NCBI GenBank assembly: GCA_907165135.1
Contig: OU015568.1
Location: 13,640,001 to 13,704,000, forward strand
Direction of reading: 5' to 3'
DNA: 64,000 bases
DNA from: Oikopleura dioica
Lineage: Eukaryota > Animalia > Chordata
The first letter of the stretch is position 1; each line of letters starts with the position of its first letter. Under the pieces are notes generated by a model, which had not been told where the DNA came from, made no database searches, and worked only from the letters and a program-made list of their open reading frames with translations. Positions 2,646 through 9,200 of the stretch are shown here, one piece after another. The translations under genes were made by a program, and so were the position numbers.

Positions 2646-4870
2646 TTAATCGCCGCACGAAAACTCTTCTGCTTCAATTTTAGCAGATTTTTTGGCAACT
2701 TGCTGGGCGAGAATGGAAGCTAAACTCGAGCTACTAGGACAACAGTAATCGTGGTTTTCTGTGAGATGATCGCGGCGGCCGTCATCCAAATCTTTCTCGA
2801 TCTGACTTCGGTAATCGGGCTCTTCACATCCGGACTCCCCAATTTCTAAGATTTGAGTACGCCTCAAATCTTCAAAAGCATCAGATGTGCTAGATTTCTG
2901 TGATTCCGTCGTATTTTCAGATCCGTGAAGCGAAAAGGATTCTGTTGAAGGGATTATTATGTCAGACGGACGTGGCGTATTTTCGCGCCAGTAGTCTGGA
3001 AATAGAGCTTCTTTCCGTGTTTGCCGACTTGGTGAGGGTTATCTTCATGGAAAATTATAGTTTATACGTGAGGGCCATCTACAGCATAATGAAGGAGCGT
3101 TGGAAAGCGTCAACCAACGTATTTACTCAGAAAAAGATAAACCCATTCCTATTTTGATTTACAGTTTTCGGAAGAATATTTTTCAATTCAGAAATGACAT
3201 TTTTCGCTCCAAGCTTCTCCAAAGGATCATCATCTGCAATCATCCTATTGAGAGTTCTACTTTCGTCTTCGTTATCGTCATGCACGACAGTTTCCTCAAA
3301 TATAATATCATCAACAACGTCAATCTGGTCGAGTTGTTCCGCCTCTGCGTTCAATAGGAATGACGTCTGGCTGTCGGACGAAGTTGTCGGCTTTACTGCA
3401 TCATCCTGAGAAGTTACATCATGCTCTTTTTGTGCTGACACGGAAAGCAGTAGGGCAAAAGCTTCGGTGACTCCAGTCGCATGTCGAGACAGATTTTCCA
3501 TGCTTGCAATTTCCATATCTTGGCATGTCTCTGGTAGAGAAGGATAAAAAAATCTGTTTAACGAAAATTTTTATACTACTTTCTTTACTGATAAACTGTG
3601 GAAACGATTAACAAAAACTTAATGATATAACAAATAGATTTTTATCCTATCTTGATACGCCTCGCGTGCGAGAAGTTGTGCATGAATAGCAAGACTTCTT
3701 AGAACGGCGAGTCTATCGTTGTGTACTGGATTACTTGTAGCATCCTCATTTTCTGGGCGTGGCTCAAGATCCAATCGTCTTATTCGATCAGTCTGTTGCT
3801 CAAGCAGTCTTATCTCATCTTGAATGGAAACACTCCTGAAGAAGAGGCTATCTTTTAGCAATTGGGATGCACTTTTCCGTATGCAAACGGAGCGTCGTTC
3901 GTGATATTCTATTATAAGCATTTCGAGCTCGGAGTCGATTGACGTCAAATTTAAAGGTGTTTCCGGATCCAATCGTTCACACACAAATGTCAAGCAAGAC
4001 TTAACATACGATTTCATCAGATGGACGTCTCTTGGACAGCGGTGATTGTTCTCTTGGCTAGACGTCGGAGATTTTACAGTAGTAAAACCCTTGTTTAGCA
4101 CTTGCATATCTCTGATAAAGCGTAGACTTCTCTGAAGTGCTCTGTCCATAAGATCAAATGTCTCCTTCATGTCTTCAACCTGTTTTAAATTTTCTTTCAC
4201 GTTGTCGTGGAAAGACCAGTAGATGAGATAGTATCGCAACCAACTGAAAAGGAATAGCAAACCACCAACAGCGAGACAAAAATGAATGACATTGATCCAA
4301 ATTGGAAAAGAATGTGCGTTCTTGATGATAAGGGCGAGGTAAACTGCAAAAATATGACCTGCGTATTTCGGAAAAGGAGAACGAGTTATTTCTTTTGTTG
4401 ATAAGACGTGCGCACGGTCTAATTCGTTATTCAGACCTTCAAGGGCATCGTCGAGTTGGAAGTCAGCTAACTGCTGCTGAAGGAATGTACGTGAGTCGTA
4501 TTCGAGTTTTGATGCTTTGATCAGATGATTGTCTTGTAGTCCTTGAAGATACTCTGCAGCTCCACGTCTCATCTTTGAGCAAAGATTTTCTTATAAATGG
4601 TTATGATCAAAAGAAAAGGAACAATAAATTGAACATACTTGCAAACATGATTGGGCTAAGATCCTGCTCGATTTGAGAGAGGTCTTCCTTGATTGCAGCG
4701 CTAGTTTGCTCAGGGGATTCTGCTTGCACATTATGGAGCTGTTGCGCTAGACTGAGTTCCTCTGTTCCTGCTGCAGGGTGGAATTCAAGGTCGAGATTGG
4801 CGAGATACCTATCTAGCGGGGAGCCGGGTTCGTCGTAGTCAACCTCGACCCCAGTTCCATCCGATCTCAT
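2646..4870 (-). CDS. VEZT: Vezatin homolog, multi-exon
   Basis: N-terminal DYDEPGSPLDRYLANL resembles vezatin ENSPLYQYLQDL. Two TM segments are followed by ALQRSLRFIRDMQVLNKGFTTV (vezatin RKALRLIQETEVISRGFTLV). 3' exons are approximate. Confidence 0.8.
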
Positions 4871-5130
4871 GTCAAATGCCAGTCTAAACGAAATGCCATT
4901 ACACACTGAGTTAATTTTTCTTAATTTTTATTTGAACTATTTTGAAAACTTGCGCGACAGTAGATTCAGTATAAACAAATGAATTCTATCCCCACGCAGG
5001 TAGATTTCGATCGGTCGAGGGAAATGTCAATAAATAAGGGTGGTGTGGAGTGGTGGAGAACTTGAGCACATGTTTTATGTTACACACTGAATCAGTTCAT
5101 CGACTGAAGTAACTTCCTTGAATACTTCAT

Positions 5131-6037
5131 TTAGAGCTTGGGGACGAGGTCAAGGAGAGCGCCAAGCTTAGAGTAGTTGAACTTCTCGCCCATGGCGTTG
5201 TTCTTGGCAACAAGGGCATCGACTTCAGCGCCCTAGATTGCGTTGACACTTGGTACTCTATCTTAATCTTACCTCAGCGCCGAGGAGCTCAGCGAGGTAG
5301 GCTCGGTCCTCCTGGAGGAGAGGAACCTGCTGGTGGGGAGCGATGGAGGTGAAGTAGTAGATGGCGGCCAAGAGAGCTGCACCACCGAGCTGTGGGTTAG
5401 CAGCAACACCGGCAGCGGAGATACCGAAGAAGCCAGCGGCGAGAATGGTCTTGATGACACCGCTCGATTCGAAGTCACCTTCGGTTCGTCCCTTCTGGGC
5501 GAATCCAGGGACAAGGGACATGATGGACTCGGAGACAGGGTAAGTGTGGTACTTGACCTTCTGGTGGTGGTGGTTCTCGTCCTTGAAGATGACGAGCTGG
5601 AAGAAGGTGAAGAAGGCAACGAAGATCTACGAATATTTTAGTTTGCTCAAAAAACGAGCTCGGATTACCATTGCCCATCCGGATCCAGAGAGGAGGAAGT
5701 TGTGGTTCATTCCTGGGCCACCAACGGTCTGGGAACCGAAGAGGGAGGCGGGGTGCATACCAGGTCGAGAGTACTTGAAGAGGAAAGCCTTCCAGTATCT
5801 TCGGACAGCCATGAAAGTGTATGGGAAGTCGACGGGTCGTCCTCGGAGCCAACCAGCAACCTGGATGAAATTTTAGGGAATGATCGTTTTGGGAGCACTT
5901 ACTTCGCCGAGCTTGAGGTCTCGGAAAGCCCGAGTGTCGGAGGGTCCAACAACAGACTGACCGGGCTTGACTCCATATCCAAGATAACCGAGTCGGTTGC
6001 CGTGGTTGTAGGCAAGGCGAGCAGTGGTGAACCTCAT
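5131..6037 (-). CDS. ATP5MF: Mitochondrial ATP synthase subunit f with ~124-aa C-terminal extension (4 exons: 6037-5903, 5860-5669, 5626-5273, 5232-5131; 260 aa)
   Basis: Spliced product contains FRDLKLGEVAGWLRGRP...RRYWKAFLFKY...WAMIFVAFFTFFQLVIFKDENHHHQKVKYH, the subunit f KLGE/KYH signature. All three introns are GT-AG, 40-42 bp and phase 0. Codon bias is strongly that of a highly expressed gene. Confidence 0.85.
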
Positions 6038-6257
6038 CCTAAAAATAACAGGCTTGAGTCCACAATTTGTTGAACGTTTTAGGTGTGTAGCATTGTCGAG
6101 CAGGAATAAACAAGAATGGTGGCTCATGTGTATGTGGCAGTAGAAATAGAATTTACATTTCGAGCGCAAAATATAAGAAGTTGGTTAGTTTTTCGTTCGA
6201 AATCGAATTTTCCTAGAAGATAGAGAGTAAAGATCAATGAAGGAACGAATGAGACGT

Positions 6258-9200
6258 CTAAGACATTGGTTCAGGTGCGGTTGAGTTTTCCACTGGTCCG
6301 TTGCCTAAATATAGTTTCAGCTTCTGCCGTTCCGCCGGAACAAACCTTGAGCAGGCTGCGGGACTGATTGACCTTGTGGTGGAAACTGCTGAGGAAAACC
6401 CTGAACAGGGGGTCCTTGAGCAGGGCCACGAGCCATATTCGATGCCTGTTGTACTTGTCCAGATGCTCCCTGAATAGATTATAGTTATAAATATTTGTGA
6501 CTAGATGTCTTACAGTTTCCGCGTTAGGCGCTCGCTGGGCTGCTTCGCGTTGACGAGTAGCTTCTTGAATTTTTATTTGCTCCATGTGGAATTGCTGGCG
6601 CTCTGCGATAAGCTACAAAATTATTTAATCGCTTGATAAAGAATCAGATGAGTACCTGTCGTCGTTGATTTTCAATAGTGTCTCGTTGCTTATCGAGCAT
6701 GTTTTCAAGCTCGTCAAGCTGTTTCATCTTGAGCTCCATTTTCTTGACTTGGAAATCAACAAGGACCGCAACTAGAGATCTGATTTTTCTTTCTTCTTGT
6801 GTTGCAAGATGTTTTGCTTTTACAGCGGCTGAAGAAAGAGCAACTGCAGCTGCCTTTTTTAGCTCTTCATCGGTCATGTCTGTTTTTTCTTTTTTGGCCG
6901 GAGAAGGACCTTCGCCTGAAACTTCAATTTATTCGTGAAAACATTATTTTATTTACCATTCTCTTTTGGAGATGATGCCGCGTCGGTATCCATTTTCTCT
7001 TCCATGCTCTCAGCGTCACGCTTAACTCCAGCGATGCCAGCTTCATCCAGACCGTGTTCAGGGTCACATTCGCCTGTAGTTTCCTTGTGTTTCATCACAG
7101 CGTCTTTGTGTGCTTCTTCTATTGCGGTGGGAACTGCGAATTGTTGCTTGCTGAACTCATTAAGAGCGGCCTTTGCCGCAGCAGCAGCAACTTGAGGATC
7201 AACCGCAGATGCGAGGAAAGCAACGGTCGTCATAACCGGATTTCCAGCTTGGCTAGACAGAGGATTAACTTATGTTAACGCTCAAGCTTAATGATTCCCG
7301 CACCTAAATGGAAGGGGCATAAAGTCATAATTTCCATCGTTTCCGGATAGTTTCTTTCCATCAAGATAGGGGTCCTCGATCGGCAATTTGAGGAAATTCA
7401 TTATACACTCGTCTTGCGTTCGACTACCCACATGTTCAGCAACTTTTAAGTTGTTTTAGTCACTGTTTCAGAATTTCATTAAGTACCTTTATTCCAGTCA
7501 TCTCTGAACATCTCCAAACCCTCTAGCAACGAAAGAGTTTCTTGCTCGGTCCATGGTTTTGACGCGTTCTTGTCCTGTTTTTTCTTGTTCTTCTCGGCAT
7601 AGATATCAGCCTTTAGCCCGAAGTTTTCAACTTCTTGCTTGGGCTCGACCTCTCCTTCGGCAGTGTCGCATACTTCTTTCGACGCTTTTTTGAATTTAGG
7701 AGCTTCAACTGGCTGCACTCCAGATGGCGTATCGGCCAGAACGTGAAAGTGGGAAGTTGGTGGAGGGCCGAGCTGAGCGGGTCGTGATTCGGCGTCGATC
7801 TTTAAGAAAAAGCGTAAGAAAAATACTCTTTGAAGAAAGGTCACCTGATAATTAACAAGACCCCATTGTTCTAGAAAAGCATGGACGCGCATAATTGCAC
7901 AAACATCACCGGCCAAATTCCTTCTACAGGCAGTCGCACTCAAGTATTCCATCGGATTCAAGCGATAAGTGTCGATCATAAAATTTCTGTAGGCCAGGTA
8001 GACTTCGGGGTTTTCGATTTGTTCTTCGAATTGAAGAACTCCGGAAGAGCGCGTTTTTCAATGGCGTGGATTGCATTGTAGTCGAACCAGGCAGAGTATG
8101 ATGGGATAATAATGTGGTGCGTTTGCTCCGTCACCTGGTCGGCGTCCGCGACTATATCCGATGGCATATCTGAAAATAAGTCAGTGAGTTTAAAAGGTCT
8201 CGTAAGTTGTACCGTAGTCTTGGCAGTCAAGGTCAAATAAAGTCACATTTCGAAGGTTTCTGTTGGTTGACGGTGGAATGTTTGCGCTCGGTTGAGAGGC
8301 AAGCGGGATATTGGGAATCTCGACGAGCTCTACTCGTGGGGATGGGTCTGGATTTTCCATACCTAATGAATGAATATATCAAACGAACCTGAGAGTGGAA
8401 ATTACCCTTTGTAAGATCTTCTTCGATCATCGGCTTATTTCTACTCCTCCTTGATTTCTTTTGGCCACCAGGCGAGGTGAGATCCGCGTCCTTACGTTTT
8501 AAACTTGGATCCCCGGAGTCCAACGGCTTGAATGCTTTGAAAACAGGGTGTTTTGCTGGCCCTATGTGCTCCATATTCGAGGCATTGAGCTGGTAGTCCC
8601 ACTCGTTCATCCACTCGTTGAATAAATAGCTGTTCTCGATCCAGTGATGACTCAACTTCCATTTAGTGTTTGGCTCTTGGGCAGTGTTTTCAAAGCGATC
8701 AGTGGTCGGCACAAGCTCTGCATCGACCCACGTCTGATAGCTCGGCGGGGAAAACCACCAATGGACAAGCACTCGATCATCCCACGTTTTAAGTGGCGTA
8801 CAGTGCTCTCTACTTGGCTTGCGAAATTGCGAGTGTTGATAAATCAGATGCGTGGCATCTTCTCTCGACTCGGAAATCGTTGCGCCGTTCATCTCTGCGA
8901 TTGATTTCAACGTTTCGCGATGCTCAGATTCGATCTTTTCAGAGAAATAAATTATCTTTTTCATCTTGTGTCTCAGTGATTTGCGAAGACGTTTGAAAAG
9001 AAGAAGGCCTGTTTTGACGCTTTCCGAATTGTAGATGTTGAAATCCTTGAGTTCGATGTCGTGTTCATCGCAGAAAGCCTTCGTGACTTTGATAATCGAT
9101 GCGAAAGTTGACTTTTCGCGGAAATCGTAAAAGTAGCTCGTTGGAATCATCATTCCAGCGCTTCGATCGCGGCAGCCGCGTCCAAAATTTCGTTCTTGGA

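Follow-up and report, generated by a model that had tools for sequence, protein, structure and literature searches.

In a 64,000-nucleotide (nt) stretch of the Oikopleura dioica genome (contig OU015568.1, positions 13,640,001 to 13,704,000; hereafter the window, whose numbering is used unless another contig is named) lies a gene for subunit f of the mitochondrial ATP synthase whose reading frame continues well past the usual end of that protein. Read directly from the sequence, the gene has four exons on the minus strand (coding sequence 6037..5131) and specifies 260 amino acids, with residues 1-136 corresponding to a divergent subunit f and residues 137-260 to an extension of 124 residues (Table 1). 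The KYH motif at the end of the f part (residues 134-136) occupies 5554..5546, the next codon, T137, begins at 5545, and there is no stop codon across this boundary, the same exon 3 carrying the frame on into the extension. Since the f transmembrane helix and KYH share that one exon with the first 91 residues of the extension, no splice choice can separate them, and the continuation is a property of the DNA and not of a splice model. The first-pass annotation of this DNA had proposed a spliced frame of 260 codons that passes KYH and runs on for 124 codons without a stop, with a GT-AG intron of its own in the added part; the exon reading bears out both statements, placing the start of the extension exactly at 5545 and intron 3 (5272..5233) inside it. 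The gene is single-copy in the genome (64.3 Mb, 19 contigs), and no separate short f gene was found elsewhere in it.

Table 1. Coordinates of the extended subunit f gene and its features in the window
Feature	Position	Strand	Remarks
AG acceptor for trans-splicing	6039..6040	-	40-nt spliced leader, 3 nt upstream of ATG; 39 raw reads and 1 contig extend past 6040
Exon 1, coding	6037..5903	-	45 aa, residues 1-45; f N-terminal region, last motif KLGE; RNA junction 5858>5901
Intron 1	5902..5861	-	42 nt, GT-AG; RNA; same place in L011
Exon 2, coding	5860..5669	-	64 aa, residues 46-109; f core (W..GRP, RRYW, KYSRPGM) and start of transmembrane helix
Intron 2	5668..5627	-	42 nt, GT-AG; crossed by 175 raw reads and 2 contigs; position kept in L011
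Exon 3, whole	5626..5273	-	118 aa
Exon 3, f part	5626..5546	-	Residues 110-136; transmembrane helix IFVAFFTFFQLVIF then KDENHHHQKVKYH, usual C-terminus of animal subunit f
Junction and linker motif	5545..5501	-	Residues 137-151, T-YPVSESIMSLVPGF; no stop, same exon
Extension helix h1	5461..5399	-	Residues 165-185, GVIKTILAAGFFGISAAGVAA; Gly/Ala-rich, borderline transmembrane; Kyte-Doolittle 1.77
NPQL turn between h1 and h2	5398..5387	-	Residues 186-189; alignment
Extension helix h2	5389..5339	-	Residues 189-205, LGGAALLAAIYYFTSIA; second hydrophobic stretch
Tail motif DRAxLAxLLG, first half	5308..5273	-	Residues 216-227, end of exon 3; alignment
Intron 3	5272..5233	-	40 nt, GT-AG, within extension; contigs join 5231>5272, 154 raw reads cross in frame
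Exon 4	5232..5131	-	33 aa, residues 228-260, and TAA (5133..5131); second half of tail motif, VDALVxKNxxMxxxxxYS, and C-terminus
3' untranslated region	5130..4955	-	mRNA end about 4955-4995; contigs reach 4955 and 4995

The gene model is matched by transcripts. At least part of the stretch is represented in 20 public RNA runs (from 8 studies), and four runs were placed on 4800..6400. Two metatranscriptome contigs with at least 99% identity to the window lack the three introns exactly as modelled and keep the frame intact (blocks 4995..5231 / 5272..5626 / 5669..5858 / 5901..6040), and the introns are also crossed by raw reads (175 over intron 2, 154 over intron 3 and 31 over intron 1). Raw reads bearing the window's species name are 90-95% identical to the window and use the same junctions; at the exon 3/4 junction 13 letters differ and the frame is kept. 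Given this level of identity, these reads derive from another cryptic lineage. Together with a synonymous divergence (dS) of about 0.4 between the window and one lineage, and of 0.7-1.2 between the window and another, this is in keeping with deeply divergent cryptic species inside O. dioica.

Past 6040, reads and a contig continue into letters that, once reverse-complemented, match the 3' part of a leader; orthologous mRNAs carry this leader in full at their 5' end, 1 nt before the ATG, and we take it to be the O. dioica spliced leader. The leader and the very short introns mark an O. dioica-type larvacean. Read depth is smooth over KYH, with no step, and 3'-tag single-cell reads peak in the 3' untranslated region (5016-5123) and not inside the open reading frame (ORF). 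Neither an internal leader-type loose end nor a cluster of ends near the junction is present among the best-supported ends listed, no internal poly(A) end is listed in the read placement, and in 14 transcript contigs from several species the leader stands nowhere but at the 5' end, immediately ahead of the f ATG. Junctions, depth and leader together show that the mature message consists of the leader and a single ORF of 260 codons. The extension is thus produced as one protein with f, from one spliced-leader-capped mRNA. The whole of the frame proposed in the first-pass annotation is covered by the two contigs and the raw reads, and no transcripts ending at KYH were seen, depth being continuous over the motif. 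The pyrimidine-rich ...ccgag just before Met145 was considered as a possible trans-splice site within the frame, from which a separate mRNA for the extension could have been made; the idea was dropped, there being no such loose end among the best-supported ones listed, no depth step and no internal leader in the 14 contigs.

Full-length protein comparisons were made with P0001, a 260-residue database protein obtained in a HMMER search with exon 3 and 97% identical over that exon; its codons differ from the 260 of the window by 14 inferred non-synonymous differences, and the window itself was compared exon by exon. The Pfam family of subunit f (PF10206, WRW) scores below its cut-off of 26.5 bits on the f part, with 18.4 bits for residues 1-136 of P0001 and 24.6 bits (E 3e-5) for residues 1-133 of P0005. 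It is the sole plausible Pfam match there, the other being a weaker one to Aph-1 (E 0.097), and a precomputed PF10206 match is attached to P0008. When a profile of the f part (alignment A3, five orthologues) was compared with the Protein Data Bank (PDB), all eight distinct matches were to ATP synthase subunit f (E 0.016-0.9). The best of these alignments spans profile positions 30-82, which include the KLGE-x-P/A-x-W motif and the RRYW..KY region, and positions 100-133 align with the C-terminal 35 residues of the solved chains, with KYH at the chain end. The f transmembrane helix is followed by a short basic segment that ends in KYH. As the PDB matches are exclusively to f and the register holds from end to end, the assignment is safe despite the weak individual E-values: by its sequence, the N-terminal part can safely be regarded as a divergent subunit f ending at KYH, as the first-pass annotation had it. 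An exon-by-exon Pfam scan of the window gave no match, and PF10206 run exon-wise against the whole genome gave none either, this locus included; exon-wise family searches are therefore of low power.

Canonical animal subunit f (ATP5MF/ATP5J2; PF10206; solved chains 6j54_f, 6zbb_f and 8h9f_R) resembles the Oikopleura f part in KLGE..W, in RRYW/KY, in its one transmembrane helix and in the basic stretch leading to KYH. The solved chains are, however, 83-93 residues long (one has 119) and end at KYH or a few residues past it, whereas 124 residues follow it here, and the Oikopleura f part is itself longer (136 residues). Its N-terminus is unusual, in that a block of about 25 residues, AxxHGNRLGxLGYGxKP, precedes the canonical f region; this block is conserved in the full-length orthologues, with HGNRLG.LGYG and R.F..IK of exon 1 invariant. 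About 20 further residues are inserted ahead of the f transmembrane helix, and both this insert and the N-terminal block are absent from the matching solved f chains.

The extension was compared in an alignment of 13 rows (A4), and the five full-length orthologues in another alignment. Right after KYH comes a junction motif, x-Y/F-P-V/L-S/T-E-S/T-I/L-M..L/V-P..F..K (linker consensus YPVSETLM..LPF.YK), in which P139, V140, E142, M145, P149 and F151, together with K154, are invariant in the five full-length orthologues. Two Gly/Ala-rich helices follow (h1, residues 165-185, and h2, residues 189-205), separated by a short turn. Its sequence is NPQL in O. dioica alone, the other forms having RRAQA, RRTQA or KRAQS, and invariance in this region is confined to Q188 and G190; Y199 in h2 is invariant among the five full-length orthologues. 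The best conserved part of the extension is the tail core DRAxLAxLLGxDxxxVDxLVxKNxxM.....YS, where all 13 rows share R217, L220, A221 and L224. The tail is predicted to form a helix-loop-helix, to which the 275-residue forms add a final amphipathic helix.

By Kyte-Doolittle hydropathy (19-residue window), h1 reaches 1.2-1.8 and h2 1.1-1.5 across the orthologues, against 1.7-2.3 for the f helix; with such borderline values the insertion of one or both helices into the membrane is plausible, not certain. Of the earlier proposal that a Gly/Ala-rich hydrophobic stretch could form one or two membrane helices, then, the stretches themselves are present, but by hydropathy they are only borderline transmembrane. 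AlphaFold2 models of the full protein (5 rows) and of the extension (13 rows) gave a confidence score (pLDDT) of 34.5 and 48.6, respectively. Helices are placed at h1 and h2 with a pLDDT of about 60, forming a low-confidence helical pair, and values are below 50 elsewhere.

Every relative found in any of the searches (about ten sequences) keeps the layout of f plus extension. The O. dioica-type forms of 260 residues fall in three lineages including that of the window, the others showing 97-98% and 88-89% identity. At least six more distant forms of 275-276 residues (L002, L035, L007, L022/L037, L004 and L036) show 39-54% identity by best aligned segment, and the 275-residue forms share the Oikopleura spliced leader. 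Partial forms, wherever they include this region, all continue past KYH into the extension. L036 (13-854) has a frameshift in the h1-h2 region, with the tail resuming in another frame and both halves present, which is probably an assembly error. In a 10.6-kb metagenomic contig from another species (L011), introns 1 and 2 are at the same positions as in the window, and a third intron is lacking, the whole extension sharing the last exon with the f helix and KYH. Intron 3 is absent from genomic contigs of two other species (L011 2896-3408; L015 704-1189) and was either gained in O. dioica or lost elsewhere.

Neither a free-standing copy of the extension nor a copy outside the larvacean group was found in an exhaustive single-sequence search and a profile search over 8000 word-sharing candidates, and a word search with exon 3 among candidates of 65-206 residues returned nothing. 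Three HMMER matches were discarded, P0002 and P0003 as repeat proteins (low-complexity noise) and P0004 for having no aligned stretch. The searches having returned relatives of the same layout alone, the extension was met with neither in subunit f of other animals nor in any other protein, which supports the first-pass annotation, and the larvacean f tail of 124-143 residues is best read as clade-specific.

Ratios of non-synonymous to synonymous substitution (dN/dS) were calculated by the Nei-Gojobori method, again exon by exon for the window. Between the window and the two other O. dioica lineages the ratio is 0.04-0.05 in the f part and 0.08-0.14 in the extension, and between these two lineages it is 0.05 and 0.18, respectively. 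The 275-residue forms L002 and L007 give 0.17 for the f part and 0.03 for the extension, and their proteins are 91% identical in the extension and 80% in the f part. Most of the listed read differences fall in third codon positions (17/20 in the exon 3 part of the extension and 6/7 in exon 4). The extension was also said to keep the codon bias of highly expressed genes, and indeed its G+C content at third codon positions (GC3) is 0.67-0.73 (f part 0.58-0.96), as against 0.39-0.54 in neighbouring ORFs. The low dN/dS, the third-position differences and GC3 together argue that the extension is translated in this frame and matters to the animal. These comparisons support the view that it is a real, translated and conserved part of the protein, under purifying selection.

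The extension resembles no family that was searched for. Pfam gave no family for residues 137-260 of P0001 or 134-275 of P0005, and no ATP-synt_8 match at E up to 10; family hidden Markov models (HMMs) of 6.8PL/j (PF08039) and DAPIT/k (PF14960) did not match the extension. Its profile found no ATP synthase chain at E up to 10 in the PDB, a set that includes whole mitochondrial ATP synthases. An aquaporin match of this profile (E 6.4) and a tautomerase match in PDB sequence searches with exon 2, exon 3 and the extension (E 0.06-0.09) were attributed to chance. ESM Atlas feature searches with the O. dioica and 275-residue extensions gave no usable match (best scores at most 0.79), and the idea that the extension is an internal duplicate of f was rejected, hhalign giving a probability of 0.1% for extension against f part. 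Subunits e (PF05680) and g (PF04718) have separate loci above cut-off in the genome (G000:C4:12690839-12690952, 30.6 bits, and G000:C4:9829614-9829886, 51.8 bits), which rules out the extension as the only copy of either, and a DAPIT/k-like exon lies just below threshold elsewhere (G000:C2:5260456-5260539, 23.5 bits). No credible match to ATP8 (PF00895) or 6.8PL/j was obtained anywhere in the genome by exon-wise searches, which have low power; an 18-bit ATP8 match at C4:4625915 lies beside a metalloprotease-type ORF (HEIGHILGLSHE motif) and was taken as chance. A sequence link to ATP8, 6.8PL, DAPIT, e or g thus finds no footing in the Pfam and PDB profile searches or in the separate e and g loci. 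The same is true of the resemblance that the first-pass annotation saw between PQL in the turn and the MPQL start of ATP8, since the orthologues have RRAQA, RRTQA or KRAQS there and conserve neither the P nor the L.

What the extension does can be approached from its position behind f. We consider it likely that the fused product stays intact and that the added part is a functional structural module of Fo beside f. Subunit f of the mitochondrial F1Fo ATP synthase of Oikopleura-type larvaceans would then continue past KYH into a C-terminal module made up of the conserved linker, the two Gly/Ala-rich helices (probably a hairpin in or on the inner membrane) and the helix-loop-helix tail. The module may have arisen by fusion with a formerly separate gene or may have grown in place as a new domain. 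In the solved bovine, porcine and yeast enzymes, f runs from an N-terminus in the matrix through a single membrane crossing to a C-terminus in the intermembrane space, next to subunits a, b, 8 and j. By analogy with these enzymes, we infer that the f helix puts KYH on the intermembrane-space side and that the module starts there, at the f corner of Fo, near a/b/8/j and the monomer-monomer interface. Three arrangements can be envisaged: (a) only h2 crosses the membrane, and the tail would be on the matrix side, following the base of the peripheral stalk as subunit 8 does; (b) h1 and h2 cross as a hairpin, with the tail in the intermembrane space and the RR/KR turn of the 275-residue forms facing the matrix, as the positive-inside rule would have it; or (c) the whole module is peripheral in the intermembrane space. 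In all three, the module would be a stoichiometric and permanent addition to Fo near the monomer-monomer interface. Its most likely role, proposed with less confidence, is that it makes up for small Fo subunits missing from the lineage (subunit 8, and 6.8PL/j, which was not detected). Subunit f itself is a known subunit; the long larvacean tail is new, and no paper was found in the literature that mentions it.

Several points weigh against such a module. It is known at the level of gene and RNA, and its presence in complex V, its topology and the integrity of the chain are predictions. No similarity of the extension to an ATP synthase subunit or to another family could be detected, h1 and h2 are borderline transmembrane in most orthologues, and the charge distribution around them does not decide between one crossing and two. 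The AlphaFold models are of low confidence for the whole protein (34.5) as well as for the extension (48.6). Finally, as exon-wise searches missed this very locus with PF10206, the statement that ATP8 and 6.8PL are not detected in the genome is a weak one.

The loss of subunit 8 comes into consideration because of what is reported of oikopleurid mitochondria. In O. dioica, atp8 was not found in the mitogenome or in nuclear proteomes (Klirs et al. 2024, PMC11384887), and the question was left open for Oikopleura (Dierckxsens et al. 2024, PMC11384890); a complete, homopolymer-free mitogenome from another Oikopleura species has nine protein genes (8 unambiguous and a putative nad2), atp8 never being mentioned (PMC12004063). 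With oikopleurid mitogenomes lacking atp8, the f tail becomes a candidate for the missing subunit 8. A comparable situation exists in Caenorhabditis elegans, which is without subunits 8, i/j and k and has extended e, f and g subunits (Buzzard et al. 2024, PMC10903453). The extensions are present in the mature worm proteins by mass spectrometry, a homology model fitted to a sub-tomogram average has a C-terminal helix of f in the place of subunit 8, and the authors suggest that f has assumed the role of that subunit (PMC10903453). Both are animal lineages without a mitochondrial atp8 and with a C-terminally extended f, but the worm protein has a structural model and mass spectrometry behind it, whereas the Oikopleura extension is known from gene and RNA. 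No similarity to nematode proteins was detected in the HMMER search (the worm f was not aligned directly), so the two extensions are probably independent in origin.

The parallel makes replacement of subunit 8 in Oikopleura a reasonable hypothesis. We advance it tentatively, as possible rather than probable, and in a joint form: the extension would replace subunit 8 either by descent, as a transferred and fused atp8, or by substitution, and the replacement may include a new segment occupying the places of both ATP8 and subunit j. Subunit 8 is the one canonical Fo subunit with its N-terminus on the side where f ends. Like subunit 8/A6L (PF00895), the extension could cross the membrane once from the intermembrane space to the matrix and continue in a helical tail; it differs in having no HMM or PDB match to that family, in not keeping MPQL, in being much longer and in its acidic tail with another pattern of conservation. 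A comparable case among ATP synthase subunits is the subunit b-h gene fusion of the SAR supergroup, which is ancient, in-frame and clade-defining (PMC10214729). It is alike in being a clade-defining in-frame fusion or extension that involves stator and membrane subunits, but both of its partners are recognisable canonical subunits, whereas the part added in Oikopleura has no recognisable ancestor.

Descent in the strict sense would mean that the extension is atp8 itself, moved to the nucleus and fused in frame behind f, with h2 as the subunit 8 transmembrane helix, the tail running up the peripheral stalk in the matrix and h1 staying on the intermembrane-space side. Oikopleurid mitogenomes lack the gene, it has not been found in the nucleus, and no credible PF00895 match lies elsewhere in the genome. 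The f C-terminus would be in the intermembrane space, exactly where the subunit 8 N-terminus must be, and the topology is suitable provided that h2 alone crosses. In the 275-residue forms h2 is followed by basic residues (NRVTFKSKS, EKAKFQPK), and Gln188 is invariant before h2, with PQL there in O. dioica. Yet the P and L of that motif are not conserved, the extension matches neither ATP8 models nor solved A6L chains, and some 50-60 conserved residues and an extra helix stand between KYH and h2. The extension is also 2-2.5 times as long as animal ATP8, and its tail is acidic and helix-loop-helix, animal ATP8 tails being short and basic. Subunit 8 is encoded in the nucleus in other eukaryotes (ASA5 and ATPTB13, PMC10214729), and the C. 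elegans analogue lends the idea further support, but homology is not demonstrable for so short and fast-evolving a protein. On balance we regard a transferred atp8 as rather unlikely.

It is likewise improbable that the 260-residue product is a precursor, cut near KYH / YPVSETLM in the intermembrane space into an f of normal length and a small membrane protein, whether part of the ATP synthase or not. The junction motif shows more conservation than would be required of a simple linker (P139, V140, E142, M145, P149 and F151), and by analogy with solved f it would be on the intermembrane-space side, where inner-membrane peptidases act; tandem precursors, moreover, are known for some nuclear-encoded mitochondrial proteins. 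However, the extension of the 275-residue forms is at least as conserved as f, and no extension was ever found apart from f, which fits a permanent linkage equally well. In C. elegans, the f extension is found in the mature protein by mass spectrometry (PMC10903453).

A third alternative, which we hold to be very unlikely, is that the extension was formerly an independent small membrane protein whose function is unrelated to ATP synthase, joined to f by the collapse of an operon and now riding on its expression and targeting. Oikopleura genes are arranged in dense operons, f looks like a downstream operon member (in L032, a SMARCC-like gene lies 214 nt away), and the extension has its own invariant Met145. 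Against this, the searches recovered no homologue of the extension on its own from any organism, and the fusion is old and has been kept in all relatives under strong constraint; a one-to-one tether to f inside Fo would also make an unrelated function unlikely. An artefact of annotation or assembly, or a non-functional read-through tail, has nothing but the lack of database matches in its favour and is refuted by the same frame in independent RNA data sets and genomic contigs, the predominance of third-position substitutions and a dN/dS well below 1.

The neighbourhood of the gene has some conserved features of its own. The same-strand gene upstream of it (6039-6585, minus strand) is SWIRM/SMARCC-like, the window ORF 6271..6585 matching its C-terminus. 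In L032, an intron-less metatranscriptome contig of 3.3 kb that resembles an operon pre-mRNA, the SMARCC-like gene (298-2283) lies 214 nt from f, with no leader between the two. A SWIRM-domain gene is also found upstream of f in the genomic contig L011 of another species (1-752), so synteny is conserved between the window, L032 and L011.

Even if it is no substitute for subunit 8, an intact module beside f would add a conserved 14 kDa to Fo at its f corner and would be likely to alter the dimer interface and the shape of the cristae in a very fast-living chordate. The extension is also a clean shared marker of the Oikopleura-type larvaceans sampled. Should the extension replace subunit 8, being fused to f on the intermembrane-space side would settle how a protein with an outward-facing N-terminus is imported and oriented, and the failure to find atp8 in the mitochondrial or nuclear genomes of oikopleurids would be accounted for. 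The gene therefore offers a testable candidate answer to the fate of atp8, left open by PMC11384887 and PMC11384890. It would also be an independent parallel to the nematode proposal: if the module stands in for subunit 8, larvaceans would be the second animal lineage, after C. elegans, in which f has absorbed that role, suggesting a general route for dispensing with the last small hydrophobic mitochondrial genes.

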